Origin: Botryllus schlosseri
Lineage: Eukaryota
DNA: 64,000 bases
NCBI GenBank assembly: GCA_051294905.1
Contig: CM119371.1
Coordinates: 7,130,001-7,194,000, forward strand
Reading direction: 5' to 3'
Shown here: piece by piece, positions 3,401-28,337 of the stretch
Numbering within the stretch: the stretch's first letter is position 1
How the letters are laid out: every line of letters begins with the position of its first letter
Translations under genes and position numbers: made by a program
Notes under the pieces: generated by a model
Seen by the model: the letters and a program-made list of their open reading frames with translations, nothing else
What the model was told of the DNA's origin: nothing
The model's database searches: none

Positions 3401-3408
3401 ACTTTGAT

Positions 3409-9000: not shown

Positions 9001-9228
9001 ATAATATCTCTTGCGTACCCCTATTTTATCGTCGTGATGCATTCCTATGTGAATGAATCTATATTGATCACACTGAAAGTCGTTTCCTCCTGAGTTACAT
9101 GGAGAGCGATACAAATAACCTTCTCCACCTTTGGGCTGTACTGCCGGTTTGTCGTAAATTATTTGAGGGTTTTCCAATATTTCTTTTGCTCTTGCAAACT
9201 TCAGAGATTTATTTCCAAGCTGGAGCAT
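6028..9228 (-). pseudogene. MULE transposase fused to SWIM, Ulp1/SENP-like (C48) protease and PHD finger; one in-frame TAA at 6490-6492
   Basis: DDE motifs (LSYDTTF, FVTDRE, CLNH, TNNISESMN); SWIM CTCASTTTCYH; Ulp1 HWILAV / VMDS / Q*LNTFDCG; C-terminal C4HC3 finger (C..IC...CVECRKWFHKSC...C....C). ORFs 6490-9228 and 6028-6489 are contiguous and in frame. Confidence 0.88.
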
Positions 9229-9924
9229 ACTTTCAGCTTAGAATTACTTTGACCGCTTGCTTCTCAGCGGAACTGGTCGGCATAATTGGATTTATTCGCT
9301 GTTGCGTGAATCGAAGAGCAAAACATAACTGCTCATACCTCGCTGACATGCTTATCTGGGTCATCTTGGAATAATGAATAACAATAACTTCGCATTTATT
9401 AGAAAGTGTAATTCAATCTTTACCAAATAAACAGCATCGCTTCACAGCATCACACACTGTAAACGAAAATGGTGTGTTTTTGCAATTTACTGCATAGCGC
9501 AGGGCGTATTTCAAGTCATCACACCTTTTGAGTACTAGAATTATTATTTGCACCCATCCCCGTGGGTGTGAATAAGCCTAATACACCCCACCATACCATC
9601 AAAAACAAACCTCAAGCATTGGCATTTCGGGTGAATTATCAGTGATTACACCTTTTTTCAGGCACTTATGAATTCAGAGGTGGTCAGTAACGAAGTACTC
9701 CTACTTTTTGAATTACTTGAAGTAGATTTTGCCCACTCACACTACTTTTTAAGTAGTTATGATTTTAGACTACTTCTACCTCTACTTGACAGTTTTCAGT
9801 TTTGTAGGCAAAAATAAGCCTAGAAAACCTGCTTACTTAATTACTTTGAACCACCACTCCTACTTCTACTTGAGTAGAAATTCCGGTGTTAGTTCTACTT
9901 CTACTTGAGTAGCGACGATGAGCG

Positions 9925-11275
9925 ATTTAGATTCCGTAGCCAGCAGATTATGTAATCGATGGTCAAATTTTCCGTCAAATTTGCCTCAAACTGGTATGGT
10001 TAAATTTTCCGCTGTTTCCGCTGCTTCGGCTGCACTCCGTTTTTCCGCTGATTTAGATTCCGCAGCGAGCTGATTATGTAAGTATCAAAGTCCGCTATGT
10101 AATCGATGGTCATATTTCCGTAATATTCGCCTCAAAATGGTATGGTTAAATTTTCCGCTGTTTCCGCTGCTTCGGCTGCACTCCGTTTTTCCGCTGATTT
10201 AGATTCCGTAGCCAGCAGATTATGTTAGTATCAAAGTCCGCTATGTAATCGATGGTCAAATTTTCCGTCATATTCGCCTCAAACTGGTATGGTTAAATTT
10301 TCCGCTGTTTCCGCTGCTTCGGCTACACTCCGTTTTCCGCTTATATGGATTCCGTAGCCAGCAGATTATGTCAGTATCAAAGCCCGCTATGTAATCGATG
10401 GTCAAATTTCCGTCAAATTTGCCTCAAACTGGTATGGTTAACTTTTCCGCTGTTTCCGCTGCTTCGGCTACACTCCGTTTTTCCGCTGATTTAGATTCCG
10501 CAGCGAGCTGATTATATAAGTATCAAAGTCCGCTATGTAATCGATGGTCATATTTCCGTCAAATTTGCCTCAAACTGGTATGGTTAACTTTTCCGCTGTT
10601 TCCGCTGCTTCGGCTGCACTCCGTTTTTCCGCTGATTTAGATTCCGTAGCCAGCAGATTATGTTAGTATCAAAGTCCGCTATGTAATCGATGGTCAAATT
10701 TTCCGTCATATTCGCCTCAAACTGGTATGGTTAAATTTTCCGCTGTTTCCGCTGCTTCGGCTACACTCCGTTTTTCCGCTGATTTAGATTCCGTAGCCAG
10801 CAGGTTATGTTAGTATCAAAGTCCGCTATGTAATCGATGGTCAAATTTTCCGTCATATTCGCCTCAAACTGGTATGGTTAAATTTTCCGCTGTTTCGGCT
10901 ACACTCCGTTTTCCCGCTGATTTAGATTCCGCAGCGAGCTGATTATGTCAGTATCAAAGTCCGCTATGTAATCGATGGTCATATTTCCGTAATATTCGCC
11001 TCAAAATGGTATGGTTAACTTTTCCGCTGTTTCCGCTGCTCAGGCTACACTCCGTTTTCCGCTGATTTGGATTCCGCAGCGAGCAGATTATGTCAGTATC
11101 AAAGTCCGCTATTTAATCGATGGTTAAGTTTTCCGCTATTTCCGTCTTTCCGTCTTTTAGGAATCGGCATTTTTTATTGTTTCCGCTGTTTCCGTTGTTT
11201 CCGCGTTTTAGGGTTCGTTTTCCGCTGTTTCCGCTGTTTCCGCTGTTTCCGCTTTTCCGTCTTTTAGGGATGCCC
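9925..11275. repeat. Right MULE TIR: about 9 tandem ~146-bp units plus terminal (TGTTTCCGC)n
   Basis: Unit starts (GATTTAGATTCCG) near 9925, 10050, 10196, 10341, 10487, 10634, 10780, 10919 and 11064. Confidence 0.88.
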
Positions 11276-11449
11276 AAAATAGGCTAACCTGCCCCCAGGC
11301 AATTGTAAATTCAAAACTTCTAAAATATAAAACGTGCATGTTAATTCAAATTCAGGCATATTGCAACAACTGATCATAAAGGAAGAGCAACAAGCATTTA
11401 ATTTACATCACATATAAGCAATCGTGGGTCAGATAAGTCCCAAAGATAC

Positions 11450-11966
11450 CAGTGATGAGCGGATAGTGCTTTTCGAGACTCCGAATCCCTCCGACAACTT
11501 TAGTGTCTGAGGAAAACTCCCTCCGACTCCGAAGAGCTCAATCCCAGACTCCGAGATACTCCGGTGAATGTCGTCAAGTATCCGAAACAGTGGCAAGCAT
11601 GGTACATGGTACACATGTTACAACATGGTACATGTGATAATATGGTTGGCCTCATAGTATTGCTTACTCTCCAGTCCCCAATTGCAGTGCAGATGGCTGA
11701 TTTTTATGCATCTGGCAATCATTTTTGCATGTTACCCGTCATATTACAACTTTACAAGGTGTCAACTGTCTGTGTTTTGGTTTGTAATCATAATCAATAG
11801 TGTATTCTGGTCAGAGCTATCCAAAGATATCGGAGACAAAAGTTACAATACTCCGAAATTCTCCGAAAAAATATCCGTAGTAAACTCCGGCTCCGCTCCG
11901 ACTGTCACAAAATTGGCAAAACTCCGCTCCGAATCCACTCCGACTCCGCTCCGATGCTCATCACTA
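11450..11966. mobile_element. hAT-type MITE upstream of the Merlin ORF
   Basis: TIR CAGTGATGAGC / GCTCATCACTA; 8-bp TSD AAAGATAC (11442-11449 and 11967-11974); subterminal CTCCGA repeats. Confidence 0.85.
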
Positions 11967-11985
11967 AAAGATACCCTTTGCAGGA

Positions 11986-12927
11986 ATGGCAAATCCTATC
12001 AAGATGAACATGCGATATTTGGCAAGAATGGGAATAATCACCGATTTGGATAAATGCATAGCATTCTTAAGAAAACACCGTTTACTGGCCTCCAGAATGG
12101 ACTGCCAAGGATGTGGAAGCATAATGACCGAGGAGAGGACTTCCAGTACAGCGGACGGTCTTCGCTGGCGATGCCACGACTCCAAATGCCGGACTACGGC
12201 AACCATACGTAAAAATTCATTTTTTGAGAAGAGTAATTTGGGGCTCATCCAGCTGGTTATACTAACGTACTATTGGGCTTCTCGTACTCCACAACGACGA
12301 ATCTCTTTCGAGGCTGAAATTTCAAAAAGAGCAATAGTAGACTGGGCCAATTTCTTGCGAGAAATATGCTCTGCAGACCTCATAGATAGGAAGGGGCCCA
12401 TCGGCGGACCGAATAGCGAAATTGCAGCGGATGAATCGGTGGTCGCTCGTAGAAAGGCAGGCAACCGACAAGGCCGTCCAGTGAAAGCGGTGTGGATCTA
12501 CGGGGCCGTAGATCTCGTCTCTAAAGAAGCGTTTGTAGAATTGGTCCCGGAGTCAGGCAGAACGACGGAAAATCTGAAAGAAATAACATTGCGCAATGTG
12601 AGAGCAGGAACAACCATCAGAACCGACGCATTTTCTTCATATCGTTCTCTCAGTGACTGGGGAGGGATGGGGTATAAGCACAGGGTGATAAACCACTCGT
12701 TACACTATGTAGACCCGGTGACGCTTTTTCATACGAATGACATTGAATCGTTCTGGCGTCAGGCTAAGGAGCTATTGAAGCTACAAAACGGCGTAAGTCG
12801 AAGATTGATTCCAAGTTATCTGGACCAATTCCTTTGGTCGAGGATGTACCCAAAAGAAGATCATTTTATGCGCATACTTGAAGCAATAGCGGCCAACCCA
12901 AAATACTATATGGGAAGTGAAGTTTGA
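11986..12927 (+). CDS. Merlin / IS1595 (ISXO2-like) DDE transposase, 313 aa, intact
   Basis: N-terminal Zn ribbon (CQGC...WRCHDSKC), helix region, DES...GR...VWIYGAVD, IRTDAFSSY, HRVINHS..YVDP...HTNDIESFW, YLDQFLW: the characteristic IS1595/Merlin motif order. Confidence 0.93.
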   Translation: MANPIKMNMRYLARMGIITDLDKCIAFLRKHRLLASRMDCQGCGSIMTEERTSSTADGLRWRCHDSKCRTTATIRKNSFFEKSNLGLIQLVILTYYWASRTPQRRISFEAEISKRAIVDWANFLREICSADLIDRKGPIGGPNSEIAADESVVARRKAGNRQGRPVKAVWIYGAVDLVSKEAFVELVPESGRTTENLKEITLRNVRAGTTIRTDAFSSYRSLSDWGGMGYKHRVINHSLHYVDPVTLFHTNDIESFWRQAKELLKLQNGVSRRLIPSYLDQFLWSRMYPKEDHFMRILEAIAANPKYYMGSEV

Positions 12928-13106: not shown

Positions 13107-15512
13107 ATGGAATTCATTTCTGTTATTGGTAATCACTACATTAATGTTCTTTATGCAATTATTTTATTGTATATTTGGACTGAAGAGACGAAAGTTTACT
13201 GCAATATAGTTAACGTTTCGATCACAGAAATGCCCTCAGGATATGAAGACAGTTTCGTGAACGCATCAATCACGAATCTGCCCTCAGGCTATGAAGACCG
13301 TGCTGGGACGATAACCCAGGCCCAGTTCGGTCAGCTGCCTAGAGAATTACCAAAAGACTGGGCCAGATTGAATTCGTCGGCTTGGGAACATATATCACTT
13401 TCACAGTGTTGGCAAATTAAAAATGTAACTCATAATTTTACGAATCCGGGCCTCTTTTTTTCGTCGACCTTTGGATATGTCAAAGCCGAAAAGATCACAT
13501 TGCAAGAATACTTATATCCAACCGGGAAATACTGGACTAGCCTTGACCGGTTTGAACATACCTGTGTTTGTGGGCGCGAAAAGGCATACATCACTCCTGA
13601 TTTGAAGCTCAAGGCCCTGGAATCAGAAATAGTTTACGTTAGACCGACAGGCCACAATGTCAGATTGGCCTGGCGCTTTTCTGAAACATCAAGAAACATT
13701 CGAGATTGGAACCCGCTTGGTTTATATCAAATAGCAATTATGAAGTACAAATTGAAAGCCTTGAAAATGTTTGCTAGTTATTCAAGTATCAAAATCAGTT
13801 GTATAACTGAACAAGTTAGAACCGAAGAAATAATGAGACAGAGAAATATATACAATGATAGTTCTACCGACTTCGTGGACTGTGTCCGCTTATGGCAATT
13901 TTTACAGTGTACTATCTGTACGGTCAGAGGACTGGTAGTAAGTTTCGAGCCACACGCAAGCAAGATAATACTGCAAGAAGAAGATTCAACAAGGAACCTT
14001 CATGTCACATTGAACAAAGAAATGGATTTCGCACCTGGATTACGCAACTATCATCCTTCAGCCCCCGTATGGTTGAGAGACATGGCAGGCGATAAGCCTA
14101 CATTGCCAAAAAATATGATCTGGGTCTATCCTAGCTACATTAATAAGTACGGTTTCGAATATCGCGATGGGCCTACACCAACGAAAATAGCAGGAGCTCT
14201 GCCAATATACCTACAATACCCTTCCATGTTGAAGCAGGATCAATCGTGTATCAGAAGAATTCAAGGCAATAGGGCTATCTGCAATGATCCTGTTGGAGGT
14301 TTAAATATGAAATTGGCGTTTTGGGATCAAATTAAATACGATTCACAGTCAAATGAGAGAAGGTATCCCGGGAAACCATTTGTAATTTTAGGAGGGAAGA
14401 AGACGGGATTGGAACAAAGCGACTCCACGCTACCAGGAAGAACTAGAAAAAAGCGTCTTTTTTTTAGTTTGTTTATTTTATCGTTCTCTGTAATTTTAAC
14501 GTTGGCTGTAACGTCAAACCTTCAGGGAGTTCTGAACAAAAATATGGACCAGCTTACTTCTCAGATGAACGCACGATTCACAAAAATCGAAAATGATTTG
14601 AAGACAGTGGCAGACGGATTAAATGATCTCTCACTTATTGGAATTGCACGCGCCCAGAAACTTAATCAAGTCATTGTGACCAGTATGCGTCGAGATGCAG
14701 CAACTGAGGAAAGATTTAAAACTATTACAAATATGATTTGGACAAATCGTAATATGATAATTGCTCAAATAGACAGTTACTTGTCTACAATCCAAATGGT
14801 ACAAGAAATGACTCTTGCAGAATTAAGTTTGAATCAATTAGTTATGGAGCAATTGCAAAATCTAACTGCAAGACCCATATTCGATAAAAATAAGGCTTAC
14901 GCTGTACGAATAAAATCGGGAATTTTAAGCCTCCGAGAAATAGCTGAAAAAATCATTGAACTAAAAGATGAGTATGTGAACATTTCTCAAAACCAGGCTT
15001 TAGATTTACAAAATACACGAAGAGAGTTGCAGAAAATCGACAATCAAGCTGAAATCGAAATAACACGCTGGCAAGAGGATTTGAACAATAGTATTTTTGT
15101 GAATGCATCAGAGTTCTCAAACGGCAATGTTAGTTTCCACCATCTTGACCAAATAATTGGGGAGGAATTCTTTGACGACGTTGGAACCGCAGTCGAAACC
15201 TTGGCAAACGGGACTTCAAAAATTTTACAGAATGTCGCTAACGGCGCTAAAACTGTAATCACAGAAGGAGTACACGGAATAACTTCTATCCTAGGAGCAG
15301 GGACACAAGCTTTGTTTGGTGACATTGGAAGTATAGTCTTGCCCATAGTGGGAGTGATTGCAGCCATAGGCATATTGATTTGCATGATCAAAATCTATCC
15401 AGTAATATTCCCGAACAAAAAGAGGATCCATCGTGAAATTCAAGGAAGAAACAATAGATCTGAAATGACCACGTATACAGCAATTCTCGCTCCAACGTAC
15501 CATCAAAGATAA
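13107..15512 (+). CDS. Viral envelope-like class I fusion glycoprotein (Env1), 801 aa
   Basis: N-terminal hydrophobic signal; Cys-containing ectodomain with many N-x-S/T sequons; furin site RTRKKR (14439-14456) immediately followed by hydrophobic LFFSLFILSFSVILTLAV; long heptad-like helices; Gly-rich pre-TM; TM IVLPIVGVIAAIGILICMI; short tail with YxxPhi. Confidence 0.8.
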   Translation: MEFISVIGNHYINVLYAIILLYIWTEETKVYCNIVNVSITEMPSGYEDSFVNASITNLPSGYEDRAGTITQAQFGQLPRELPKDWARLNSSAWEHISLSQCWQIKNVTHNFTNPGLFFSSTFGYVKAEKITLQEYLYPTGKYWTSLDRFEHTCVCGREKAYITPDLKLKALESEIVYVRPTGHNVRLAWRFSETSRNIRDWNPLGLYQIAIMKYKLKALKMFASYSSIKISCITEQVRTEEIMRQRNIYNDSSTDFVDCVRLWQFLQCTICTVRGLVVSFEPHASKIILQEEDSTRNLHVTLNKEMDFAPGLRNYHPSAPVWLRDMAGDKPTLPKNMIWVYPSYINKYGFEYRDGPTPTKIAGALPIYLQYPSMLKQDQSCIRRIQGNRAICNDPVGGLNMKLAFWDQIKYDSQSNERRYPGKPFVILGGKKTGLEQSDSTLPGRTRKKRLFFSLFILSFSVILTLAVTSNLQGVLNKNMDQLTSQMNARFTKIENDLKTVADGLNDLSLIGIARAQKLNQVIVTSMRRDAATEERFKTITNMIWTNRNMIIAQIDSYLSTIQMVQEMTLAELSLNQLVMEQLQNLTARPIFDKNKAYAVRIKSGILSLREIAEKIIELKDEYVNISQNQALDLQNTRRELQKIDNQAEIEITRWQEDLNNSIFVNASEFSNGNVSFHHLDQIIGEEFFDDVGTAVETLANGTSKILQNVANGAKTVITEGVHGITSILGAGTQALFGDIGSIVLPIVGVIAAIGILICMIKIYPVIFPNKKRIHREIQGRNNRSEMTTYTAILAPTYHQR

Positions 15513-15615: not shown

Positions 15616-18600
15616 ATGAAGATAAAGATCTTCCGGGAGTCGATAATTGGGATCATGTGGATTCTAATCAATTTGAGTCAAGGTAAAAAGGTATCTCTTA
15701 CTGAAATGTCACTAATAAAATTGCACGATTTAAATGTTTCACGTTGGATGCTGTATAATGAGAGTCAAGTTATATTACATGCCCCGTTACATAGGTTATT
15801 TGAACTAGATGCACCCACTACTTCTAATTATGGGCACATCGAAATGATTACAGGACATAGCAGTCAATTTGGACCAGTCAAAACCTTTGGTCAGACATTG
15901 CAAAATAATCTTGGGAGGAAGAATCAACATAACGTATATTGGGAGGATCCTTTAACCTTTGAGCAAACCTGTATTTGCCGAAGGAAGATTCACTATATTG
16001 AACCACCTCTGGCATATGCAAATTTGTATAGAAAGATCAGATACGTAAGAGCAGATAAATTTAATGCGCGTTTCATTTTTCGTTGGGCTGAAAATAATAT
16101 CACCTTACCAATATCAAATCCCCGAAATGCACACACTCCCGTAATGACAGTATACAAATATCTAATCATAAATTTGCTCATAAATTATCGAGTAGTGATT
16201 GCCAATTGTGTAAAAATATGGCATCCTGAGAAATTCGAAACCAGCATCTCAATGCGTAATTTCTATGTCTGTACAACTGGAGATCAAAGATTGACGAAAT
16301 GTTACGCTTGCCAATTTAAGGGAGAAAACCCAGTCATGAATATAGTGGATACTGGAATATTCATACAAGAACAAGATAGTACGATCAATGATTTTGTAAC
16401 AAGGAACGACACTGACAGTGCTTTAGATTCTAGCATACTATATGCCGCCTCAGAAAATAAATGGCCTTTAGAGTATTTTGACAGAGTGGCGTCAAATCGT
16501 ATATATTGGATTAGAGCTAGCTCGAAAATATCTACTGAACTTATATTAGAGGACGGTGACAACTGCTTTCGTGATGGACCAAATCTTAGACAAGCCGGAA
16601 GTATACCAATAAAAGAAACTACACCATCTATGATGGCAAATGACCCAAATTGCCATCGTCGTGTACTGGGAAAGACAAAATGTAATAAACCTATGGGTGG
16701 AGTTGAGGCCAAACTTATGCTTGGAAATCACATGACGTATGACCCTTCACTAAATAAACAACAATTTGTGAATGTTCATGGAGGTTTTTTGATGAAAAAC
16801 AAAGGATTTCGCATTCCCGAATCATTTGAACATAGTAATCAGACTTTCCTTTTGGTATGGAGACATGGAAATACGAATAGAATTGGCCAAATACTACGTG
16901 AAAGTTGGTTTCAAGCACGAGAAAGGGTAGTTACCATTTTCGCTAATATATCCAGACCAATTAACATGATAAGATCTAGATTACGAGCAATGATGTCTCG
17001 CGAACGAAATTTTCCAAGAACGATGAATATATTATCGAACAAAATCTCCAGACTAAAGAGGGGACTATTGCCAACAGAAGTATCACGATTAAACAAAGCA
17101 TTCAGTCAGATGACTGCAGCTATGATTCTATTGAGAGCGACTATGCGACAGATAGAACTGTTTGAAATAAGAATTTGTTATAAAGCTAGCTTTCAAAATG
17201 GAAGTTTAATTTATGTTCCTTTCGCCTATAAGGAAACTGTGCCCCGAAGCGATTCACTAACATCCAGCATACCAGAAACAGATATGACTACATTGACGAA
17301 TAGCGAAATTACACTATCTCGAATGACATCATCAGTTGTGACAAATATTACGGATAATATAGGAATTGGCGCATATACAGTGGTAGAGTCACCATTAAGG
17401 ACTAAGATTTTGACATCGTCTCTATCGACATCGCCTGATACAATATTGAAATCATCAAACGTTACTATTGGGAGAAATCAGACATATGATGTCACTAGGC
17501 CCGAGGCCCTACTATCACAAATACCAACACAGGTAACCTTGTCCGAATATTCAACTAATTCACCGACTACAAGAGAAACTGATCAGCACCGGCAAATGCT
17601 AACAGCAGCATCAGATACGACCATCTTTTTGCCAGAAGTTCAGCGAAATTCAAATTATTTCAATACCACAACACCATCAATAATACTTCCATATGAGGTA
17701 AGTGCACAAAGAGTAAGCATTCTCATTACAGGTATATTTAATACAACGACACAAGCAATGAAGAATACAGATATAATCACAAGGAATGCCACGTTCACCC
17801 GATCTACAACACATACAACACCGATGTCAATCATGATGGCCATTACTACATTAACAGAAGACAACTCAAGCTCAACTGCAAACTCCACAAACTACAAGGA
17901 AGACTCAATTAAATTGCCGCAAGCCGGTAAGTGGACTGTAACGACAAATGAAGATATATTGTTCAGACCAACGATAGAACCAAAGTCAAATTCGACAACT
18001 GAAACGCCAAATCCATTCTCACCCATATCAAACTTATTAAACACGTCGGAAGAATTACAACAAATTTCAACAACCCCAGTGGGAAAACGCAGCTCAGTTG
18101 CAGAAACCATTACCCAAGAAGATATGCGAGGTAACAACGTTTCAACACAAAATGACTCGAGTCATACAAACAGATTACAATCAAGTGCTCCAACGTTCAT
18201 AACAAAACATGCAAGTATAGTAGAAATTTCAAAAATGTCTCACAAGATTGTAATGAATAATTCTAACAGCTCAGTCAATGACAACATAAGTATTTTTGCC
18301 ACGCCTGATCCTAGTAGACATAGGGTTGGAAAAAGATCCTGGGAAAATACCACCATTTTGGCCAATAGCACGAATCAAAATCCAATTATGACGGAAGAAA
18401 TAACATTTAGGTCAACAAGCCAACCATTGATGTCAGTTAGAAGAGTTGAAATCGGACCCACGACTGATAGTAGAAGTACTAATTTCAGTGGACAGAGCCC
18501 CATGCACGTCACAAGAAGTAGTACTGAAGAAAAATTGAACACTAATCACAATACTACGTCTTTAGCATCATATACTACGCAAGCTACAACAGAAACTGGT

Positions 18601-19218
18601 GAAAAGATCAAACCAACTATGAGAAGTCGGGTAACCCACATGAATATTACTTGGGAAAATATCACGTTAGCACCAAATAGATCAAACTGGGACACCACTA
18701 ACTTAAATCTAAGTAATTATGAGACTACTATGAAGTATGAGTTGGGCCCTGAGCATACCAGAGATCAACAGTTGATTACCAAGAATATGCCTAAGGCGAC
18801 ATATTTAGCTTTTCAACCTAATGTAAATTCAAGCTGGATGGTATCGCCAAGTGATAATGAAGAAAAATTCAATTGGACTCAAGAACTTTACAAATTATCC
18901 GCCTTGGAGAGGAATTTTTCATTGGAAATAGATTCATACATCATCTTCAGAACTCATGTCAAGCGTGTCAGGGAACTTGCAAATGAAAATCTCTCTGGCA
19001 TTGTAAGCGCTGGAATCATTATAGCAATAATCACTGGAATAATGATATATCTAGTACGAAAATTCTGCAGTCAAAAGAAACAATACAATATGCGTGCTCA
19101 ACGTAGAATTGTAAAACGTAATGTGAGACACGAGTTGAAAAGGAAAATCCTAGAAGAATTGCAGAATAACTCAGAAATAATGGCATTAAATCATGAAATG
19201 AATGAATTAATCGCATAA
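15616..19218 (+). CDS. Type I membrane glycoprotein (Env2): Env1-paralogous head, mucin-like Ser/Thr stalk, TM anchor; 1200 aa from the ATG
   Basis: Signal peptide (IIGIMWILINLSQG); head motifs collinear with Env1 (FEQTCICRR vs FEHTCVCGR; QEQDST vs QEEDST; RDGP; CHRRVLG..CNKPMGG vs CIRRIQG..CNDPVGG); ~500 aa T/S/N-rich; TM GIVSAGIIIAIITGIMIYLV; basic tail. Confidence 0.78.
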   Translation: MKIKIFRESIIGIMWILINLSQGKKVSLTEMSLIKLHDLNVSRWMLYNESQVILHAPLHRLFELDAPTTSNYGHIEMITGHSSQFGPVKTFGQTLQNNLGRKNQHNVYWEDPLTFEQTCICRRKIHYIEPPLAYANLYRKIRYVRADKFNARFIFRWAENNITLPISNPRNAHTPVMTVYKYLIINLLINYRVVIANCVKIWHPEKFETSISMRNFYVCTTGDQRLTKCYACQFKGENPVMNIVDTGIFIQEQDSTINDFVTRNDTDSALDSSILYAASENKWPLEYFDRVASNRIYWIRASSKISTELILEDGDNCFRDGPNLRQAGSIPIKETTPSMMANDPNCHRRVLGKTKCNKPMGGVEAKLMLGNHMTYDPSLNKQQFVNVHGGFLMKNKGFRIPESFEHSNQTFLLVWRHGNTNRIGQILRESWFQARERVVTIFANISRPINMIRSRLRAMMSRERNFPRTMNILSNKISRLKRGLLPTEVSRLNKAFSQMTAAMILLRATMRQIELFEIRICYKASFQNGSLIYVPFAYKETVPRSDSLTSSIPETDMTTLTNSEITLSRMTSSVVTNITDNIGIGAYTVVESPLRTKILTSSLSTSPDTILKSSNVTIGRNQTYDVTRPEALLSQIPTQVTLSEYSTNSPTTRETDQHRQMLTAASDTTIFLPEVQRNSNYFNTTTPSIILPYEVSAQRVSILITGIFNTTTQAMKNTDIITRNATFTRSTTHTTPMSIMMAITTLTEDNSSSTANSTNYKEDSIKLPQAGKWTVTTNEDILFRPTIEPKSNSTTETPNPFSPISNLLNTSEELQQISTTPVGKRSSVAETITQEDMRGNNVSTQNDSSHTNRLQSSAPTFITKHASIVEISKMSHKIVMNNSNSSVNDNISIFATPDPSRHRVGKRSWENTTILANSTNQNPIMTEEITFRSTSQPLMSVRRVEIGPTTDSRSTNFSGQSPMHVTRSSTEEKLNTNHNTTSLASYTTQATTETGEKIKPTMRSRVTHMNITWENITLAPNRSNWDTTNLNLSNYETTMKYELGPEHTRDQQLITKNMPKATYLAFQPNVNSSWMVSPSDNEEKFNWTQELYKLSALERNFSLEIDSYIIFRTHVKRVRELANENLSGIVSAGIIIAIITGIMIYLVRKFCSQKKQYNMRAQRRIVKRNVRHELKRKILEELQNNSEIMALNHEMNELIA

Positions 19219-20038
19219 TGATTAATGTTTTCAGACTATTATTCACTGAAATATGAAGCATGAAAACTTGACTAACTATGTAATACTAGTGGAAACGGAC
19301 TGACACGCCCAAGGCTATGAAGTCGTGATAAGTTGTAAACAGGCTTATTGCTGTACTGTGGAAAATATGATTCCTTATTCCTGCAATGCAGTAAAAACCT
19401 TGCTAGCCCGGGGCTGTAACAAAACAAGTACTAAGACTACATTGGAAGCTTGACGTAAAAATGTGAAAGATACACTTACTTTCATATGTGAAACGTGATC
19501 TCAAGACCGTCGCATAAATACAATGTCTTTTGTAAAACTGATGATATATCCCAAAATAGGCAGTAGTCCATCACCTCTGCAATAAAGTAGATATATTTTC
19601 GAAAATGGAATGGCAATGACTGTATATTAACAAGAGATATACGGGCAAATTTTAGTGACGAGTCGTTAAAGCAGTATTCATTTCTCAAATACGATCCCAA
19701 ACCCTTACCTTTCCAGATTACCATTTCTTTTTTCAGGCAAGCGCTACATCAGATTGCTGTGAAATGACACAGTAACATTTACATACATTGGATCAAATGT
19801 AAATAATTATAAAAATCATTTAATATCTCATTTCTTGTTTCATTATACTGTAATTCATTCCTTTCGTTATATTTTGGTGAAAATATGTTGACATGAAGAA
19901 AATCACGACAACATGATTATAATTAAATAAATATACCTAAAAAATTCACAAAACCCTCAAAAACCGAAAAATATTTTGTTATTTAGTCTATACAGGTGAA
20001 TTTAATTTTGAAGCTTTCAATTTTGCTGCTAAATTGCA

Positions 20039-20670
20039 ATGATATCATTTTTGGGTGTTCTTATTGTTATAAAACACAAAAAAAAACATATATTACAAAA
20101 GAATCTTAAAATTCAGATTCAACAAAAAAAGGTATTCGCAAAAACATGTAGATTTAGATTTGTAACGATAGAAGATTCCAAAATTCTGTACATAAGGAAT
20201 ATTATTTCTGGACAGCACAGGCTGACAATTATGAAACCTTGTGAATATACTGAGCATCCAGGGCCCTAGATTATCGAAGACACCTCCTGGGTAAGTATGA
20301 TGTAAGTATATTTTACTGTTTTCTATCAAAGTTTCGAGACCATATTTAGTAGAAATATGGACAATCTCCTATAAACTGCGAAACCAGGGCAGGCTAATCC
20401 ATACGAAGCCGAGTAGAAAAAGATACATGCCATTGCGTAAAGCAATAGATAATTGCCCCTCTAGAACTAACAATACTGGCCCTTTATTTTATAACTAATA
20501 AAAAATACGACACAATTGGACCAAACATGAGTAGTTTATGCGATCTTCCAATTACGAGATAGGTAGTAAATGTATATAAATTCACGCATCACCATACTGT
20601 AGACACAATCCAGTCGTTAATGGAATGGATGTTGGGACACATTGTACAATTCTGGGATCAATTGTAGGTA
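20039..20670 (+). pseudogene. Possible decayed accessory ORF
   Basis: Protein-like reading (KTCRFRFVTIEDSKILYIRN...; HHHTVDTIQSLMEWMLGHIVQFWDQL) broken by several stops and a probable frameshift near 20425; no family recognised. Confidence 0.3.
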
Positions 20671-22255
20671 TGTTTTAATAAATTATAGGATTGTGAGAAG
20701 AGAGAATAACTCGGCACAGAATCAATAATATTCTGAAGTCGGAGGGCAGCATATTTCCTTTAGTAACCCTGTGAAAAGGAAGTAGAGCATTATGTTATGT
20801 TTTTTTTTGTACAATAATCAGTTATCAGTTTAACTCAATTTAAGAACAAGACCAAATGCTAATGAAATCAGAGTTTTCTATGGCTAATTATAACATAATT
20901 ACAAGTACCTGGTTCAATCAAAGTCCTTCATTGTGTAGTGAGAACTTGGATGCATGATTATGTTGAATTGGTCCTTAAGATTTCTTGAAAGATTGATTTG
21001 GCTGTTAGTACAAGGAAAATGGAAGTTCAAAACATTATTTACAAAATTTAACGTCTATCCTAGAAACAGGTTAATTTGTCACTTACTAAAAGTTTAAGCC
21101 TGGTTATTATTGAAGAATACTGCCGCCCCAAAAAATACCCAATAAATAAGGGAGTTAAGAACTACATATTTAAAATGAAGGTAACTACTGAACCCTATAA
21201 CTCAATCGGTATGGCTGAACACCAATAGCCATTACATCATGGAACAGGCCAAATTTGCTCAATTTCCTTTCAAATGAAGCTGTAAAGCACCCAACACTAT
21301 TGAAATGTTTCACTAGGCATCACAGAAATAGTGGAAAGCTTGACAAGTGAGTTTTCACAAAAATGTCTAAAGTGACATATTTTTTCTTTCAAGTAGGCAT
21401 AGAAATTGTCATGGAAAATTACTGGTACGATATAAAAAAATGAAGCACCAACAGATTATGAAATTCTGCTTTCTGAATGACAGATCGTGAGTGCAAACCA
21501 ACATATTTTGGAAGATAAAATCTCTAAAATATATAAACTGAGTAGAATTGACCTATGAAGTAATGTGCACACTACGTAATACAAGTGAAAACTAACCTTG
21601 TGTCGGATGATGCCTGGGCGATGTCTCGCGGTATTGTGCGGTGTCTCCTGGTACCTTCCGGTGCCGTGATATAATCTAAAATGACGGAAGTAATGTGAAA
21701 CTTATTATCAGATAAACTTCTCACGACATTTTGCAAAACAGGGCGTAGTCATCCAAAGAATGTAAAAATCTATATATACAAGCATAGATTTTTTTCTGAA
21801 TATTTCGAAATAAATATATACACCCACTCAAGATAGAACATTCATTCGGTCACTAGCATATTCTTATATCTGGAGGTCAGATACTCATGAATTATATTGA
21901 AGATAGAACAAGATAGTTTTTGTAATGACATATTACTAGACGGAATAGTACATGGATATATATACTTACCGATTGTTGAATTTAGGTGAAGTGATTGATA
22001 TAGGCTATTATAACTGAAAGAAAGTAAGTAGAGAGAGTTAATTATAAAAAAAAGGATAATAGAACGACAAGATCCAGGCCTTGCAAGTGACAATCATGTA
22101 TCGTTATGTTATATTGATGTTGTATCATATGTTATTTTACATAGTGTGTTATTGATTGCACAAAGTGAAGCTTTTACATATAGTAAAATGTTTGCTATTG
22201 ATTCTAGATTGTTTAATGTGAGATTGATTCATTGTAAACTTTCATTACAAAGAAT

Positions 22256-23167
22256 ATGGCAACTCCTTCAGATCTACCAGCAACATCACAATCTTCTGTC
22301 ATTATACTTGAAGATTGGGAGCCTGTACTACGGGAAACTGATTCCGATGATGATTTCCCTCTAGACAATGATTACAGAGTCCAGATTGAAATGGAATGTA
22401 GATGCAATACATTTTGTAATCTTTTTTTCTGCCGCGGACCTCTACTGAAAGGAAAGGGAAGATCGCGATTTTATGGCCTGAGTTTGACAACCTTGCTAAC
22501 AGGCCTTGTCAACAACATGCACAGATACGGTGGTGAATTGGTAGATAGACTGGCGTTCAGATTGAATTCACGAATCAGAGAATGGACTCAACAACGAGCT
22601 GTTTGTAACAGAAGAAACAAGCTCAATATAATCAACTACCAGTTCATTGTCGGTGGAATCGAAATGGATATCGACCATTATATAACACGATTTGCAAGAA
22701 AACACCTACTAAGACACGACATAATCCCATCTCTCAAAGGTGGATACAGCAAGAGGGATTGGAATGAGATGAACATTGATGTGTGGGAAAGAACTAATTG
22801 CCCAGTTTTTCTCGAGAGAGAGGAAGATATATTTCATGCGTTCTCGATTTGCGACGAAATATGGAGAAGATTGCCAACAGCCTTCCCAATGTTCAAGGGA
22901 TTAGAGTCGTCCTTGTGTGAACCCGTGAAAGACGTGAACTGGAAGAAAGCAGCTGTCGAGCAAATAAGAAGGGATGCCATTATATTCATCTACTATCCCA
23001 ACCTTATCATTGAATCGCTAGCAGCAGGCGACTGTTTTTACAATGTAGAAGAACTCCGACCGGAGGCGGAGAATGTGTACAAAAACAGGTACCTAATGCA
23101 TGTAAAGATTGGGAAACTAAGAACATTATTGATCCGATATGATGAGAAGAATAAGAATAAGGAATAA
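22256..23167 (+). CDS. Orphan 303-aa protein within the virus-like cassette
   Basis: ATG-initiated 912-bp intronless ORF in AT-rich surroundings; acidic N-terminus (ETDSDDDF) and Cys cluster CRCNTFCNLFFC; no family recognised. Confidence 0.7.
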   Translation: MATPSDLPATSQSSVIILEDWEPVLRETDSDDDFPLDNDYRVQIEMECRCNTFCNLFFCRGPLLKGKGRSRFYGLSLTTLLTGLVNNMHRYGGELVDRLAFRLNSRIREWTQQRAVCNRRNKLNIINYQFIVGGIEMDIDHYITRFARKHLLRHDIIPSLKGGYSKRDWNEMNIDVWERTNCPVFLEREEDIFHAFSICDEIWRRLPTAFPMFKGLESSLCEPVKDVNWKKAAVEQIRRDAIIFIYYPNLIIESLAAGDCFYNVEELRPEAENVYKNRYLMHVKIGKLRTLLIRYDEKNKNKE

Positions 23168-24903
23168 GGAGCTGATGTTGCTGAATAATCTGAGAACTGG
23201 AGAGTTGCTATATGAAACTGTTTATTTCTGGAGTTATCCATTTACCTGTGATCTGCTGAGTACTGCAATTATTGGTGTGAGTACACTCTTTATCTATGAC
23301 AAAACATTACTTTCCCCTGTTAAGATATCTTAAGCTGTCTGGTCCTAGGTATCTGATTGCAAAATACGGAAATATTTGCCGTTGATATCAGATTAAACAA
23401 AGCATAAATAACACCTTAATCACACTATATTATGGCCTCAGCATTAACAGAATAAACTAAATGATTAGATACATTAATCAATTCCTAACTGTCCTTTCTA
23501 CCGACTAACTGAAATCCCTGACTATTTGTCGCTAGACAAAGTTTTCGCCAAAAATCAATGTCATGGTTTATGAGTAACCACTATTGTCGCCATTGAGTAT
23601 TTCGAACAAGTGACGTATTTTGAATTAAAACAAAATCTGACATGGCCTTAGGCATTGCAGTCAAGGGCGTGAAAAATTCTTTAAAATTTAACTTAAGATG
23701 TGCTTTTCGTATTGGTGATTGCTGAATTATTATGTATAAAGTATAAGATGTTGTAACAAAAATGGACGTTACGTGTTATAACTGACAACACCACATATAT
23801 ATATGTCAGGATCCTTCGATCTAAAGGAGCGAAGTTACAAATTCGCTTTAAAATGGGAAATGTTTGCTCTGATAGGCGGTACATACGAATATTGAAAAAA
23901 AGCTTAATACAACTATATATTGATAATAGGGATTAAAGTTGCACAATACCCTATGAAAAAATAAAAACCAGAATTAATAGTACTGAGTTAGCACATTTAA
24001 CATCTGCAAGCCATGTACAAGGGACTACTTCTCCCAAATGTAAAATGTGTAATGATTGACGCGATACCTTTCGAAATTTTTCATAATGATACATTCGTAC
24101 CGCACTGAATCATTCACTTAAATGGCGCCAGTCAGAGAAACCGTTGCTATGGTTTTTGATAAACAACTGATATGTGCATTTCGTATAGTTTGACTGTATA
24201 TTGCATTTTGAAGATAATCTACATCTGAAATTGACTGACAGATGATTCAAATCGATACTAGAGCGTTATGAGTGTAATTTGGTTTATAAATTGTGCATGA
24301 TAGACGTGAATGGAAAAATTTTAATTATACCTTGAAGAATTTTATAAGTGCGAATCATTTATGATTGAATTTATTGTTAATTAGATCTGTATATCTGTTA
24401 AATGACGCAAAATTCATTGGAGTATTTGGTTGTATTAAGACAGGAAATGTGTTTTCTAGTAATATCTGAGCTCTGGACCGCATATGGTCGTTGTTGACTG
24501 GGGCAATGCGTGAAGATTGAACACCTGGAAGGTTACAGAAGAAAGAAAAGAACCTGGAATAAAGGTTTCAAGACTGATATCTACTGAAATTCATAGACTG
24601 TTAGAACCAGTGATATCACTGTCCCCTGAACATTCTATTCCACACAATTGGTGGCCAGTACGGATTCTTCAACTTCCATTTGTGATATCTCACATGCACT
24701 GCACAGAACAACGTTGCAGACTGATTTTCACAAGGTGTATTTTAGCAACTATCTCGACATTCATACTCATATGGACGGTGGTACAAGTATGCTGGTCTTC
24801 AAAAGGTGAATACCCATCTTCGAACTCTACGAATATTTCAACAGATGAGGGTGTTTATTTCAAATTATAAAGACAACAAAAATAGTGGGTCAATATTTTC
24901 ACA

Positions 24904-26037
24904 ATGAAGAAAATTTTTTCGAAAAAGCCGAAATCTACATCAAAGGATGCTCAAGCCTTACAAGAGAATCTTGCTCTTATGAAGGACACAGTCAAACGTC
25001 ACCAAGATGTTGAAATGAAACGAAGCCAGTTGAAATTGGCCGTAAAACAACAAGCAGAATTATTCAACGACATGAAAAATTTAATTCCAAAAACCACAAA
25101 AGAACTAGACTCGGCAAATCGTGACGTCAAGACCGCTCAAGCCGACCTATCAATGATAAAGCGCGCAACTGAAAAAGCATCTATGAAGATTGATTCTCAG
25201 ACGTTAAATGAAGTTCTTTCGGCGGAATTTGATTTAGGAAAAGCACATCAGAGAACAATAACCGGCTCCGGTCCAGCAACGTTATCGGCCGCCGTAGAAG
25301 TTATATCACCGCCTGCACCAAACTTGATTTCGATTAAACAACCAACTAAGCCACCAGCATATGCAGTAACCAGACAGCAATTGCAAACTGGCGAGAAGGG
25401 AAATAACAGTGATGTCTTTGCCCAAAAAATAGCCCCGCTTATACCGCAGAAATTGGTACCAACAGGCTCCAAACAGAAAAATACTTACAAGAATATATAC
25501 CCCCGATTAGATGGAGGTAGCGATACACAGTGTTATGTGACAGGTATCGAAGGTGTGGATACAATCCCTAATAACCTCATAATCCGGGGGTCATTTTTAC
25601 CCCAGCAAGACCCAGAATTCGAGCCGAGAATCCTGGCTTCACAGCGGACTCAGTTAATCCCACCGCCACTTTTCTCGCCAAATGTGATTCATGAACAAGG
25701 CCGTTTAGTAGTACCTTCCCCTGAGAGACGCGGGGTACCGTGGTACCTGCCGGAAGAGGCTCAAAATGACGATTCGGGGAGGCTCGATGATTCAGATGCT
25801 GCGGCATCTAATATCTCTGACCCACTGCCATACAGAAACAAGCGAATTATGCCGATGTCAGAGATGATCTCTGTAATGAAATCGGCTGGGTCAACACCGT
25901 TATTGCCTTGGTTGGAGGATAACCTCCGTATCCTGGATCATAAAAACGGCAATAGCCTTATCGATCGAGTCCTGGCTAACGCGATGCAGGCAAAATTGAT
26001 CGAAGCAGGCCGTCGGGAGGATGCAGAAATATTCGAT
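24904..26037 (+). CDS. Gag/matrix-like protein, truncated at 26037 by repeat DNA (ORF reads through to 26181)
   Basis: Basic amphipathic N-terminus (MKKIFSKKPK), ~100-aa coiled coil, Pro-rich middle with PPAY and YPRL late-domain motifs, then a helical capsid-like start (PLPYRNKRIMPMSEMISVMK...PWLEDNL). The last ~47 aa come from the minisatellite. Confidence 0.6.
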
Positions 26038-27500
26038 AGGGTTGGTGCTCTCACTTTACAAATAGGAAAAAAAGTTTGCAAATGGGCAAGGATTTACTTT
26101 GCAAATGGGCAAGAAAGTTTGCAAATGGGAAAGTATTTACTTTGCAAATGGCCAAGAAGTTTGCAAATGGGCAAGGACTGATTTCACTTTGCAAATGGCC
26201 AAGAACGGTCAAAAATCACGGCTTTTCATTGTATCGCATTTTTTGTGGTGTATTGAACTGATAAAATTGCTAATAAACCAATGATGATGGGTGGGGCCAT
26301 CAGCACCCTCAGTTGAGCATTGGAGCCAGATGGGTCCTCTCCCGCAAATTCGGCGAAATCCAAATCCAAATTAAAAAATCTAGATCTTAATCCAAAATTG
26401 ACGTCAGTTAGTTCGTGCTACCATGTGACCCCCATCGCCAGATTCACCACCACTAATTCGGATAAATCCAGATTTAGTTGGTGCTGTCAAAACTCACGAC
26501 ATGGTGGGGTCGTCAGCCCCCCAGTTGAGCAAGACCCAGATGAGGCCTCCCTCAACACATTCGGAGAAATCCAAATTCGAAAATCCAGATCTTCATCCAA
26601 AACTGGCGTGAGTTAGATCGTGCTGCCATGTGACCCCCGCATCCCCCATCACCACCACCAATTTTGATAAATCCAAATCCAGAATTAGTTGGTGCGGTCA
26701 GTCCCCCAGTCGAGCAAGACCCAGATGAGTCCGCCTCCCACATATTCGGCGAAATCCGATCGTGGTCAAAACTCACGACAATGTGGGGTCAGCGCCCCCC
26801 CCATACTTGGACACTACCCAAAAGAACCCTCATCCCCCAGAAATACGGCGACAAGGACACTCATCCCCCAGAAATACGGCGACCCATCGTCTATTTGACC
26901 AAATCCCGAACCCGAAAATCCATACTTTCATCAGAGTACACCCCTCCCGCACTTCTTTTCTCTTAAGTTGCAAATGGGCAGGAAATTTTTCAAATTCGAA
27001 GGATTTACTTTGCAAATGGGCAAGCATTTACTTTTCAAATGGGTAAGCGTTTACTCTTCAAATAGGCAAGGATTTATTTTCCAAATGGGCAAGAAAATTT
27101 GCAAATGGGCAAGGATTTACTTTGCAAATGCGGGCAAGAAAGTTTTCGAATGGGCAAGGATTTACTTTGCAAATGGGCAAGGATTTACTTTGCAAATGGG
27201 CACGGATTCACTTTGCAAATGGGCAAGAAAGTTTTCAAATGGGTAAGGATTTACTTTGCAAATGGGCAAGAAAGTTTACAAATGGGCAAGGATTTACTTT
27301 GCAAATGGGCAAGAAAGTTTGCAAATGGGCAAGGATTTACTTTGCAAATGGGCAAGGATTTACTTTGCAAATGGGCAAGGTCGGTGTCCGATTCCATAGA
27401 CAACTCCTAGTCGCTTCGACATCTTCCTTTCTTTTCATTGTATCGCATTTTTTGTAGTGTAGTGGATTGAACTGATAAAATTGCTAATAAACCAATGATG
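26038..27500 (+). repeat. Composite repeat copy A: TTTGCAAATGGGCAAG minisatellite, LINE-type 3' tail, GC-rich subrepeats
   Basis: Starts AGGGTTGGTGCTC; alternating 20/23-bp units; tail ...ATTGAACTGATAAAATTGCTAATAAACCAATGATG at ~26250-26290 and ~27465-27500; reverse complement at 37742-38967. Confidence 0.85.
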
Positions 27501-27503
27501 AAG

Positions 27504-28010
27504 TCTGTTCTGCAAATTGTGAATTCAAATACCGGTGAAAAATTTTCAGACCCTGCGATCGTCGCGAATCACTTCAATGAATATTTTTGTAACGTAGGCT
27601 AGGTCCTAATATTGTCTCTTCTCTTGCGAAACCTGCGTCAGCCAGGCCGGAGGTAAGATCGACATCTCAGTCTGTTATGCTCGATCCTGCCAATCACGCC
27701 GAAGTAGAAGTAGCCATCCACAAACTGAAATCCAACAAGGCCGTCGGCAATGATCAAGTCCTATTTTTTAAACTTCATGATAGAAAGCGGTGTCTATCCC
27801 AGCTCTGAAAACAGTCAGAGTGGTACCAATACACAAAGCTGGGGTTGGAACTAATGTCACTAACTATACAGAGTACAGACCGATATCTGTTCTTCCGTGT
27901 ATTGGGATTGTCTTCGAAAAGCTGCTCCTGTCTCGCCTATCTTTCTTCAATACCTCGCCAAAATGTCTATAATTTCCCCGCATCAATTTCGATTCCGCAT
28001 TAAACACCAA
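27504..28010 (+). pseudogene. Degenerate LINE (CR1/L2-group) ORF2 fragment upstream of the RT core
   Basis: Translates as DPAIVANHFNEYFCNVG*, EVEVAIHKLKSNKAVGND, VVPIHKAG, YRPISVLP, FEKLLLSRL, with stops and frameshifts. Confidence 0.85.
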
Positions 28011-28014
28011 ACCT

Positions 28015-28215
28015 CACATCATCATCATCATCATCTAATGGTTTATTAGCAATTTTATCAGTTCAATACACCACACAATATGCGATACAATGAAAAGACA
28101 GGAAGAAGTCCAAGCGACTTGGAGTAGGCTAGTCTATGGAATCAGACACCCGCCTTAGCCTAGGAGATGTAAAGAGGAGGCATGCACAGTTGCACAGAAT
28201 GCACACTGAATGAAA
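28015..28215 (-). repeat. LINE/SINE-type 3' tail ending in (GAT)n
   Basis: Reverse complement of the tail inside repeat A, ending in a longer (GAT)n run. Confidence 0.7.
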
Positions 28216-28337
28216 GTAAAGATCTAGGGATGGTGTGAACTTCTGAAAGGTTCAGGTTCGTGTGAACGCGAACCGAAAGGTTCTGTGTGAACGCGAACGT
28301 GAACCTCACGACGTCACGTGACGTCATATTGCTAATT

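Follow-up and report, generated by a model that had tools for sequence, protein, structure and literature searches.

A pair of paralogous envelope-type genes beside a transposase gene in the genome of Botryllus schlosseri

The stretch of DNA analysed here, referred to as the window, comprises 64,000 nucleotides of the Botryllus schlosseri assembly GCA_051294905.1 (contig CM119371.1, positions 7,130,001 to 7,194,000, forward strand), and all coordinates below are those of the window. Three intact open reading frames follow one another on the forward strand. The first, at 11986-12927, encodes a 313-aa DDE transposase of the IS1595/Merlin type with an N-terminal Cys/His zinc-finger-like region. 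The second, Env1, starts 180 nt further downstream, at 13107-15512, and encodes 801 aa, while the third, Env2, occupies 15616-19218, with its ATG at 15616, its stop codon at 19216-19218 and no internal stop in its 1200 codons. Just upstream of the transposase ATG, at 11479-11949, lies a cluster of CTCCG motifs, containing 16 of the 46 copies found in the window, all on the forward strand and without a mirrored cluster downstream. This cluster may be a regulatory or terminal region of the cassette. A scan for bacterial promoters and terminators was uninformative for this eukaryote-like DNA.

Env1 is a predicted class I fusion glycoprotein, and in terms of sequence and predicted structure it shows every hallmark of this class. 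Namely, it has a signal peptide at residues 3-25, a cysteine-rich head at about 118-420 (nt 13458-14366), a polybasic site RTRKKR at 445-450 (nt 14439-14456), directly followed by a hydrophobic fusion peptide at 451-473 (nt 14457-14525), a long helix at 471-566 (nt 14517-14804), a beta hairpin and a second helix at 598-659 (nt 14898-15083; the helix itself at 613-659), and a membrane anchor at 738-767 (nt 15318-15407), as obtained from the translation, hydropathy analysis and a scan for R-x-K/R-R sites. R450 is conserved in 26 of 27 aligned rows. AlphaFold2 run on a 3-row alignment was of no use (mean pLDDT 34), but with a 44-row alignment the head was predicted mostly with pLDDT above 90, while the helices listed above were predicted with pLDDT of only about 40-77.

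Env2, in turn, has a signal-like N-terminus at residues 1-24 (nt 15616-15687), a head at 82-384 (nt 15859-16767), a conserved middle region at 385-546 (nt 16768-17253), a Ser/Thr/Asn-rich stalk at about 547-1060 (nt 17254-18795), a membrane anchor at 1121-1152 (nt 18976-19071) and a basic tail, predicted to be cytoplasmic, at 1153-1200 (nt 19072-19215). The sequence-only reading had claimed that the head of Env2 is an old duplicate of the Env1 surface subunit mounted on a mucin stalk, and this observation is confirmed. In particular, BLASTP aligns Env1 119-420 with Env2 82-384 (28% identity over 320 aa, 43% positives, E 4e-27), and every motif pair that had been listed as shared between the two proteins lies within this alignment. 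The Smith-Waterman score of 264 compares with 37.3 +/- 5.3 for 500 shuffled sequences (z = 42.6), whereas the C-terminal parts of the two proteins are not similar (z = 0.9) and blastn finds no similarity at the DNA level. What is more, seven cysteines align across Env1, Env2 and P0001, an Env1-type relative introduced below. Residues 540-1060 of Env2 contain 31% Ser/Thr, 9% Asn and 6% Pro, as compared to 12% Ser/Thr in residues 1-539, and they hold 23 of the 36 N-glycosylation sequons of the whole protein, with no tandem repeats. In composition this region is therefore mucin-like, although its proline content is lower than in classical mucin domains, and any O-glycosylation is an inference from composition alone.

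One correction to the sequence-only reading concerns the place where the stalk begins. Namely, the stalk does not start right after the head, as residues 385-546 form a separate region which is conserved with P0011, an Env2-type relative, and which aligns weakly, but in the same order, with the first half of the Env1-type fusion subunit. In a profile-profile comparison with hhalign, Env2 81-546 aligns with Env1 118-622, and the sub-region alone gives an E-value of 0.0014, as compared to 0.59 for controls. P0011 scores 15.7 bits against the fusion profile of the Env1 type, while the best of 400 shuffles reaches 10.9. That said, the middle region of Env2 itself does not match this profile (score -6.5), meaning that the argument for a remnant of the fusion subunit rests on P0011 and on a weak profile-profile score. 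Env2 is, consequently, not simply a head on a stalk, since it probably keeps a degenerate piece of the fusion subunit. As for the fusion machinery proper, an R-x-K/R-R site followed at once by a hydrophobic segment is present in Env1, P0001 and P0002 (a second Env1-type relative), while no hydrophobic segment follows the head in either Env2 or P0011. P0011 has no R-x-K/R-R site at all, and Env2 has one at residue 479 which is neither conserved nor followed by a hydrophobic stretch.

The family to which these proteins belong is very small, with 44 hits among 1.84 billion representative sequences, and it has no relative in Pfam, the PDB or BFVD. A word-indexed search with the Env2 head found nothing, and neither did pattern scans for Env relatives in IMG/VR and JGI metagenomes, while larger alignments were too diverse to yield search patterns. 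On one contig, an Env1-type gene (P0002, 769 aa) and an Env2-type gene (P0011, 722 aa) lie 98 nt apart, in the same order as in the window. The contig of P0001 likewise has a gene starting 90 nt after its Env1-type gene; in these contigs, from sample SRR25569784, the 463-aa gene after P0001 and the 613-aa gene upstream of the transposase gene are as yet unidentified. Env2 and P0011 are 28% identical over 541 aa (E 8e-51) and share a tail motif. In trees of the heads, Env2 and P0011 form one clade, and Env1, P0001 and P0002 another, each with 100% bootstrap, so that the duplication predates the split of these lineages. It should be noted that only two Env2-type proteins are known, not counting a third, on the P0001 contig, the sequence of which was not read.

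The surroundings of the pair are not what the sequence-only reading had assumed, as the window shows no retroelement around these genes. In particular, there is no similarity to the gag or pol of the relatives anywhere in the window, and the BEL/Pao element at 30729-37630 is separate. If one sets aside a MULE insertion with a clean 9-bp target duplication, about 1.3 kb remain between a host-like BTB-Kelch gene and the ORF upstream of Env1. This ORF is not gag or pol, but matches Pfam DDE_Tnp_IS1595 (E 2.1e-14); its columns D214 and E254 are invariant in the alignment with relatives, and the DE(S/T) motif is shared by the three full-length rows. A relative of the transposase lies upstream of an Env1-type gene, on the same strand, on the P0001 contig and at two further loci, L003 and L088, directly in the first two cases and with a 487-aa ORF in between in L088. 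The linkage is thus seen in four lineages including the window, and the window and L003 transposases are sisters in a neighbour-joining tree (bootstrap 88/100). More distant Env1-type genes lie in gag-pol elements without a retroviral integrase, namely after gag and a PR-RT-RNaseH pol at loci L002 and L006, and after a pol C-terminal end at locus L001, while a fragmented remnant of pol is present in L088. No IS1595-type DDE is present in the RT-bearing relatives L001, L002 and L006, or in L007, and none of 80 metagenome loci holding transposase relatives carries an Env gene.

The limits of the window cassette and its mobility remain unproven. Searches for terminal inverted repeats, LTRs or a target-site duplication around it were negative: no direct repeats flank it, and no convincing inverted pair exists between the left flank (2300-2819 plus 11285-11990) and 19219-30700, the best match being 12 nt. 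The cassette carries a transposase of the Merlin/IS1595 kind, but lacks detectable inverted repeats with the 8-9 bp target-site duplication of such transposons, and, equally, the locus does not qualify as an LTR retrotransposon or endogenous retrovirus.

We also asked whether Env1 could be assigned to an established class of envelope proteins. An F-type env of paramyxoviruses, pneumoviruses, baculoviruses or errantiviruses can be rejected, as none of the 44 members has an F-family Pfam hit, and the cleavage site lies at 56% of the protein length, while F proteins combine a small F2 with a large F1. Foldseek against the PDB and BFVD gave no hit below E 0.1, and the PDB profile search gave only insignificant coiled-coil hits to HA2 and coronavirus S2. 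A gamma-type retroviral Env would be expected to carry a CX6C(C) loop in the ectodomain of its transmembrane subunit, but Env1 has no cysteine between residues 393 and 758, and the only TLV_coat hit, in one relative, is insignificant (E 0.12). Finally, a foamy virus Env was suggested by one relative only (P0029), the match of which covers just the anchor and tail end of the Pfam model Foamy_virus_ENV (913-972 of 982) at 23.8 bits, below the cut-off of 27, and no foamy virus chain appeared in the PDB profile search.

How can these findings be explained? We consider it somewhat more likely than not (a probability of roughly 0.55) that Env2 is the second member of a conserved pair of paralogous membrane glycoprotein genes belonging to a virus-like mobile cassette, in the order transposase, Env1, Env2. 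In this view, Env1 is the fusogen, which would be cleaved at RTRKKR into a receptor-binding head of roughly 425 aa and a fusion subunit of roughly 350 aa, with a fusion peptide, two helical repeats and a membrane anchor. Env2 would have arisen from an old duplication of the whole env gene, keeping the head fold and a degenerate stub of the first helical region, but losing the cleavage site and the fusion peptide, while its membrane-proximal part would have become a long, non-repetitive, heavily glycosylated stalk that holds the head far from the membrane. Env2, on this account, therefore cannot fuse membranes and most likely acts beside Env1, on the same membrane, as an attachment or regulatory partner. 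The wider family would be the env gene of a little-known group of gag-pol elements that lack a retroviral integrase. What our analysis demonstrates directly is the homology of the two proteins, the age and retention of the pair, the loss of the fusion motifs and the linkage to the transposase gene, while cleavage, any trimer formation, glycosylation, surface display and the division of labour between the two proteins are inferred. The interpretation put forward in the sequence-only reading, i.e., a two-component entry system in a retroelement, is thus only partly supported: ancient paralogy, the missing furin site and fusion peptide, the stalk and the anchor all hold, the retroelement context in the window does not, and the two-protein entry role, while plausible, is an inference from anatomy.

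A bolder possibility, which is tentative and in our estimate more likely wrong than right, is that these genes belong to a previously undescribed lineage of retrovirus-like elements of invertebrate-type genomes. Such elements would carry a DDE transposase of the IS1595/Merlin superfamily, placed between pol and env, in place of a retroviral integrase, an envelope fusion protein of a fold with no known relative, and a two-glycoprotein surface built by duplicating env and turning one copy into a stalked, glycan-coated, non-fusogenic head.

Of the competing explanations, the one that survives best, although we deem it unlikely, is that Env2 is not an entry helper, but a blocker or shield, i.e., a membrane-anchored, non-fusogenic copy of the head that occupies the receptor in cells already carrying the element, or that masks Env1 behind a glycan coat. 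The anatomy in its favor is the same as for the main explanation, with the head kept, the cleavage site and fusion peptide lost and a heavy predicted glycan load, and env-derived surface-subunit proteins that block receptors exist in vertebrates (Fv4, Rmcf, Refrex-1, suppressyn). Moreover, Env2-type heads diverge faster than Env1-type heads (30% as compared to 41% identity for the matching pairs), as expected under conflict. However, known blockers are host-fixed single genes and not genes kept in tandem inside the element, and a long stalk projecting the head outward fits attachment better than retention of a receptor in the same cell. Less likely still, the cassette may no longer be mobile, with Env1 and Env2, and perhaps the transposase, domesticated by the host for a cellular role such as cell-cell fusion or adhesion. 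The three intact ORFs, the lack of detectable terminal repeats, the single copy in 64 kb and the absence of gag or pol nearby speak in favor of this, but two lineages only about 40% identical (P0001 and P0002) coexist in a single sample, truncated or rearranged copies occur elsewhere (L088), the family is patchy and very rare, and its relatives sit inside gag-pol elements. That Env2 is a decaying duplicate without function is improbable: it does diverge fast, its stalk length varies widely (about 520 aa as compared to about 140 aa in P0011) and the fusion motifs are lost, but a 3.6-kb open frame in DNA of 37% G+C does not persist by chance, and P0011 is also intact and keeps the head cysteines, the middle region, the anchor and the tail motif. 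Finally, an ordinary multi-exon host mucin, which had been named in advance as the case that would overturn the observation and for which only the Ser/Thr-rich composition speaks, is refuted, since Env2 is a single uninterrupted ORF with no Pfam domain and no tandem repeats, its head is homologous to that of a predicted furin-cleaved fusion glycoprotein, and its only relative, P0011, lies directly after an Env1-type gene.

It is instructive to compare the pair with the closest known systems. In pneumoviruses and paramyxoviruses, an attachment protein (G, HN or H) and F are likewise encoded by two adjacent genes, one for a cleaved class I fusogen and one for a non-fusogenic surface glycoprotein, and pneumovirus G also carries a long Ser/Thr-rich, heavily glycosylated region. 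There, however, the two proteins are unrelated and the attachment protein is a type II membrane protein, while here the partner is a type I paralogue of the predicted fusogen itself, and Env1 has a large N-terminal subunit (predicted cleavage at residue 450 of 801). Filovirus GP is a class I glycoprotein with a mucin-like domain, and a second, secreted product shares its receptor-binding N-terminal part without the fusion subunit, but in that case the shared head comes from one gene through transcript editing, and not from an ancient duplication with a membrane-anchored second product; no sequence or fold relation to it was found. The env genes of invertebrate LTR retrotransposons, i.e., the F-type and gB-type env of errantiviruses and relatives (PMC13524379), lie downstream of pol in endogenous elements, as do the distant members of the present family in L002, L006 and L001. 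Those elements carry one env of the F or gB type and a retroviral integrase, while the present family matches neither type, its pol has no rve domain, and one sub-lineage has an IS1595-type DDE gene before env. That paper contains neither the words attachment, mucin or transposase nor the phrases "two env" or "second env", and literature searches on Merlin together with envelope genes, on the sample accessions, on Tpt1 together with retrotransposons, and on duplicated or two env genes found nothing relevant. Ordinary Merlin/IS1595 transposons carry only the transposase between short inverted repeats, and the nearest relatives of the window transposase in metagenome contigs are solitary transposase genes, while the lineage studied here is stably followed by envelope genes and no inverted repeats were found around it. 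Lastly, virus-like DNA transposons with fusogens, such as nematode Mavericks with a captured fusogen and Teratorn, a piggyBac-herpesvirus fusion, also link a DDE-type integration enzyme to envelope glycoprotein genes, but they are large elements with capsid and DNA polymerase genes, none of which was seen here, and the relatives of the present env family sit with reverse transcriptase instead.

Separate attachment and fusion proteins are usually unrelated. Here, the putative partner was made from the predicted fusogen itself, and the pair has been kept across deep divergence, which gives a natural example of how a one-protein entry machine can split into two. What is more, while the protein family is absent from Pfam, the PDB and BFVD, the Env1 head is predicted with high confidence and may, therefore, represent a new receptor-binding fold. 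Finally, the repeated linkage of these envelope genes to a Merlin-type transposase gene, and of their distant relatives to gag-pol elements without an integrase, points to an unrecognised way of combining integration and envelope modules in animal mobile elements.

The two genes are long, unbroken ORFs on the + strand, lying 103 nt apart: Env1 runs 13107-15512 (801 aa), and Env2 runs 15616-19218 (1200 aa from its first ATG). Neither has a Pfam domain, even at E = 10, and neither has a sequence relative in the PDB. BLASTP aligns Env1 119-420 with Env2 82-384 at 28% identity, with E 4e-27, and this alignment contains every one of the motif pairs on which the sequence-only reading based its claim that the Env2 head is an ancient duplicate of the Env1 head. 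We compared the local alignment score with that of shuffled sequences and obtained 264 against 37.3 +/- 5.3 for 500 shuffles (z = 42.6). In contrast, the C-terminal parts are unrelated (z = 0.9), and there is no similarity at the DNA level. What is more, seven cysteines align across Env1, its closest relative P0001 and Env2, while each head has nine in all. The original observation is, therefore, confirmed.

As for the anatomy of the two proteins, Env1 has a hydrophobic N-terminus, followed by the cysteine-rich head, a polybasic RTRKKR at residues 445-450 with a hydrophobic segment immediately after it at 451-473, a long helix at 471-566, a hairpin at 598-611, a second helix at 613-659 and a membrane anchor at 738-767. 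The ectodomain of its C-terminal subunit has no cysteine, and the arginine that precedes the predicted cut is conserved in 26 of 27 aligned relatives. Env2, on the other hand, has a signal-like start and the head, but no hydrophobic segment after the head and no conserved polybasic site. Instead, residues 385-546 form a basic, conserved region, followed by about 520 residues with 31% Ser/Thr, 9% Asn and 6% Pro, which carry 23 of the 36 N-glycosylation sequons of the protein and no tandem repeats, and finally by a membrane anchor at 1121-1152 and a basic tail. Both paralogue types keep a cysteine at the cytoplasmic end of the membrane anchor (Env1 C759, Env2 C1151, and, in the relatives discussed below, P0001 C743, P0002 C726/C734 and P0011 C686). 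This residue could be an acylation site, and it hints that the anchors are homologous as well.

Is the region after the Env2 head really new? Env2 and its Env2-type relative P0011 align continuously through residue 538. A profile-profile comparison of the Env2 type against 21 Env1-type proteins runs in the same order from the head to the conserved F-D...A-Y...G motif that follows the first helix (Env2 81-546 against Env1 118-622). Taken alone, this sub-region gives E 0.0014, against 0.59 for a reversed control and a stalk control. Moreover, P0011 scores 15.7 bits against a profile of the first half of the Env1-type fusion subunit, where the best of 400 shuffles scores 10.9, although it should be noted that Env2 itself does not score. 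We read this as suggestive evidence that the whole env gene was duplicated and that the fusion subunit of the copy then decayed. The alternative, namely a head grafted onto a stalk, fits less well.

Relatives of these proteins are few. A word-indexed search of 5.8 billion proteins found one relative of Env1, P0001, which is 49% identical, while a profile search of 1.84 billion cluster representatives found 44 proteins at E <= 0.001 and 19 at E <= 1e-30, most of them fragments. Only P0011 (722 aa) is of the Env2 type: it has a head, a middle region, a short Ser/Thr-rich stretch of about 140 aa, an anchor and a tail with the same R-R-I-x-K-R-N motif. P0011 lies 98 nt downstream of the Env1-type gene P0002 on one contig, and on the contig with P0001 a further gene, considered here by its position alone, starts 90 nt after it. 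In a neighbour-joining tree of the heads, Env2+P0011 and Env1+P0001+P0002 are separate clades, each with 100% bootstrap. The duplication is therefore older than the split of these lineages, which are about 40% identical, and the pair has been kept, with the Env2-type heads having diverged more than the Env1-type heads (30% against 41% identity). Finally, some distant Env1-type proteins (P0005, P0008 and P0044, from the loci L001, L002 and L007) have N-terminal extensions of 200-400 aa. Those of P0008 and P0044 contain a membrane-span-like segment of their own, and P0005 has a weak EGF-like match (E 0.031), a layout that recalls a leader peptide.

With the 44-row alignment, AlphaFold2 predicts the Env1 head (about 110-420) mostly above pLDDT 90, while the mean for the whole chain is 67. 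Foldseek found nothing below E 0.1 in either the PDB or BFVD, and a profile search of the PDB gave only insignificant matches of the long helix to HA2 and coronavirus S2. One relative has a sub-threshold match to the anchor end of the foamy-virus Env model, which we treat as a lead only.

The gene directly upstream of Env1 (11986-12927, 313 aa, intact) is an IS1595/Merlin-type DDE transposase with conserved acidic residues, and all three genes of this cassette are unbroken. Directly upstream of the transposase start codon, at 11479-11949, lies a dense same-strand cluster of CTCCG motifs (16 of the 46 in the window) in two groups, with no mirrored cluster downstream of Env2. Further upstream lies a MULE transposon, 2820-11275, bounded by a 9-bp target-site duplication AAAATAGGC. 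Its transposase ORF (6490-9228, minus strand) has MULE and Ulp1-protease (Peptidase_C48) domains, and the transposon has long subterminal arrays of a 146-nt unit, with three copies on the left and about eight on the right. Setting the MULE aside leaves about 1.3 kb between a BTB-Kelch gene and the transposase ORF. There is no room here for gag and pol, and no similarity to the gag or pol of the relatives was found anywhere in the window, nor did we find inverted or direct terminal repeats around the cassette. The wider window contains three intronless BTB-BACK-Kelch paralogues of 542-546 aa (559-2196 on the minus strand, and 42157-43785 and 62023-63651 on the plus strand), which are 86-93% identical at the DNA level, two of them lying in a segmental duplication about 19.9 kb apart. 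It also contains a BEL/Pao LTR retrotransposon (30729-37630, within 26038-38967), whose LTRs are 100% identical over at least 300 nt and which has one 1975-aa gag-pol ORF (31345-37272). This element lies between large inverted repeats (26038-27356 and 37781-38967, 97-99% identical) that contain 43-nt tandem units, and it looks like a young insertion nested in another repeat-bounded element. In addition, there is a perfect tandem duplication of a 243-nt unit at 28337-28822.

A relative of the transposase lies on the same strand just upstream of an Env1-type gene in three other lineages: on the P0001 contig; in the locus L003, where the transposase is 41% identical to that of the window; and in the locus L088, where a 487-aa ORF with a PWP3A-B_C domain (1063-2526) lies between them. 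The window and L003 transposases are sisters, with bootstrap 88/100. Their nearest other relatives are solitary transposase genes, and none of 80 metagenome loci holding such relatives has an Env gene.

More distant Env1-type genes (20-27% identical) are the env-position gene of one family of reverse-transcribing elements. Namely, the loci L002 and L006 have a gag with a weak zinc knuckle and a pol with RT and RNaseH (plus a protease match in L002), but no rve integrase and no IS1595 domain, while L001 has the end of such a pol just before its env. After RNaseH, where an integrase would be expected, the pol of L002 (6573-9308) and that of L006 (4206-7190) end in a domain resembling RNA 2'-phosphotransferase (Tpt1/KptA); the PDB match is E 4.5e-7, while the Pfam PTS_2-RNA matches are below the cut-off in both. 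The gag-pol-env unit of L002 is flanked by inverted repeats of about 4 kb (1-3963 and 17910-21868), 99% identical, that reach the edge of the locus examined, and no LTRs were seen in L002 or L006. Like L088 with its PWP3A-B_C protein, L006 carries an extra cell-like gene inside the element, in this case for a 424-aa protein with two CUB domains between pol and env (7242-8516). Not all of these genes are intact: the env of L006 is called as two ORFs (one break), the Env1-type gene of L088 is truncated once, and the transposase of the locus L004 is degenerate. L088 also carries remnants of the same pol family downstream of its truncated Env1-type gene, surviving only as several fragments.

In comparison with what is already known, the pair would work like the F plus G/HN pairs of pneumo- and paramyxoviruses, and like the mucin-bearing filovirus GP with its head-sharing products, but it belongs to none of these families by sequence or fold. 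It also differs from the F-type and gB-type env genes recently mapped across metazoan Ty3/gypsy elements (PMC13524379), a paper that does not contain the words attachment, mucin or transposase, or the phrases 'two env' or 'second env'. A phrase search of the literature library used here for duplicated or paired env genes within one element found nothing relevant.

Two readings of the kind of element may be considered. On the one hand, the cassette may be the 3' part of a retroelement in which the DDE gene serves integration, which fits the same-strand 613-aa gene upstream on the P0001 contig and the pol remnants in L088. On the other hand, it may be a transposase-plus-envelope unit in its own right. 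The window copy has neither pol nor recognisable ends.

The sequence-only reading had proposed a two-component entry system that arose by duplication of one receptor-binding domain, and this interpretation is partly supported: the paralogy of the heads holds, while the entry system is an inference from anatomy. While the homology of the heads, the absence of a conserved cleavage site and of a post-head hydrophobic segment from Env2, and the age and retention of the pair follow from the analyses described here, the cleavage of Env1, the glycosylation of Env2 and the role of either protein are inferred. In particular, sequence alone does not distinguish between an Env2 that binds a receptor for entry, one that blocks a receptor, and one that shields Env1. 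We favour a role as an attachment or regulatory partner, with a probability of roughly 0.55, over that of a blocker or shield, which we consider possible but unlikely. The best-supported reading is that Env1/Env2 is an old, retained pair of paralogous envelope genes of a virus-like mobile element, in which Env1 is the predicted fusogen and Env2 is a non-fusogenic, stalked and, judging from its sequons and composition, glycan-rich partner.
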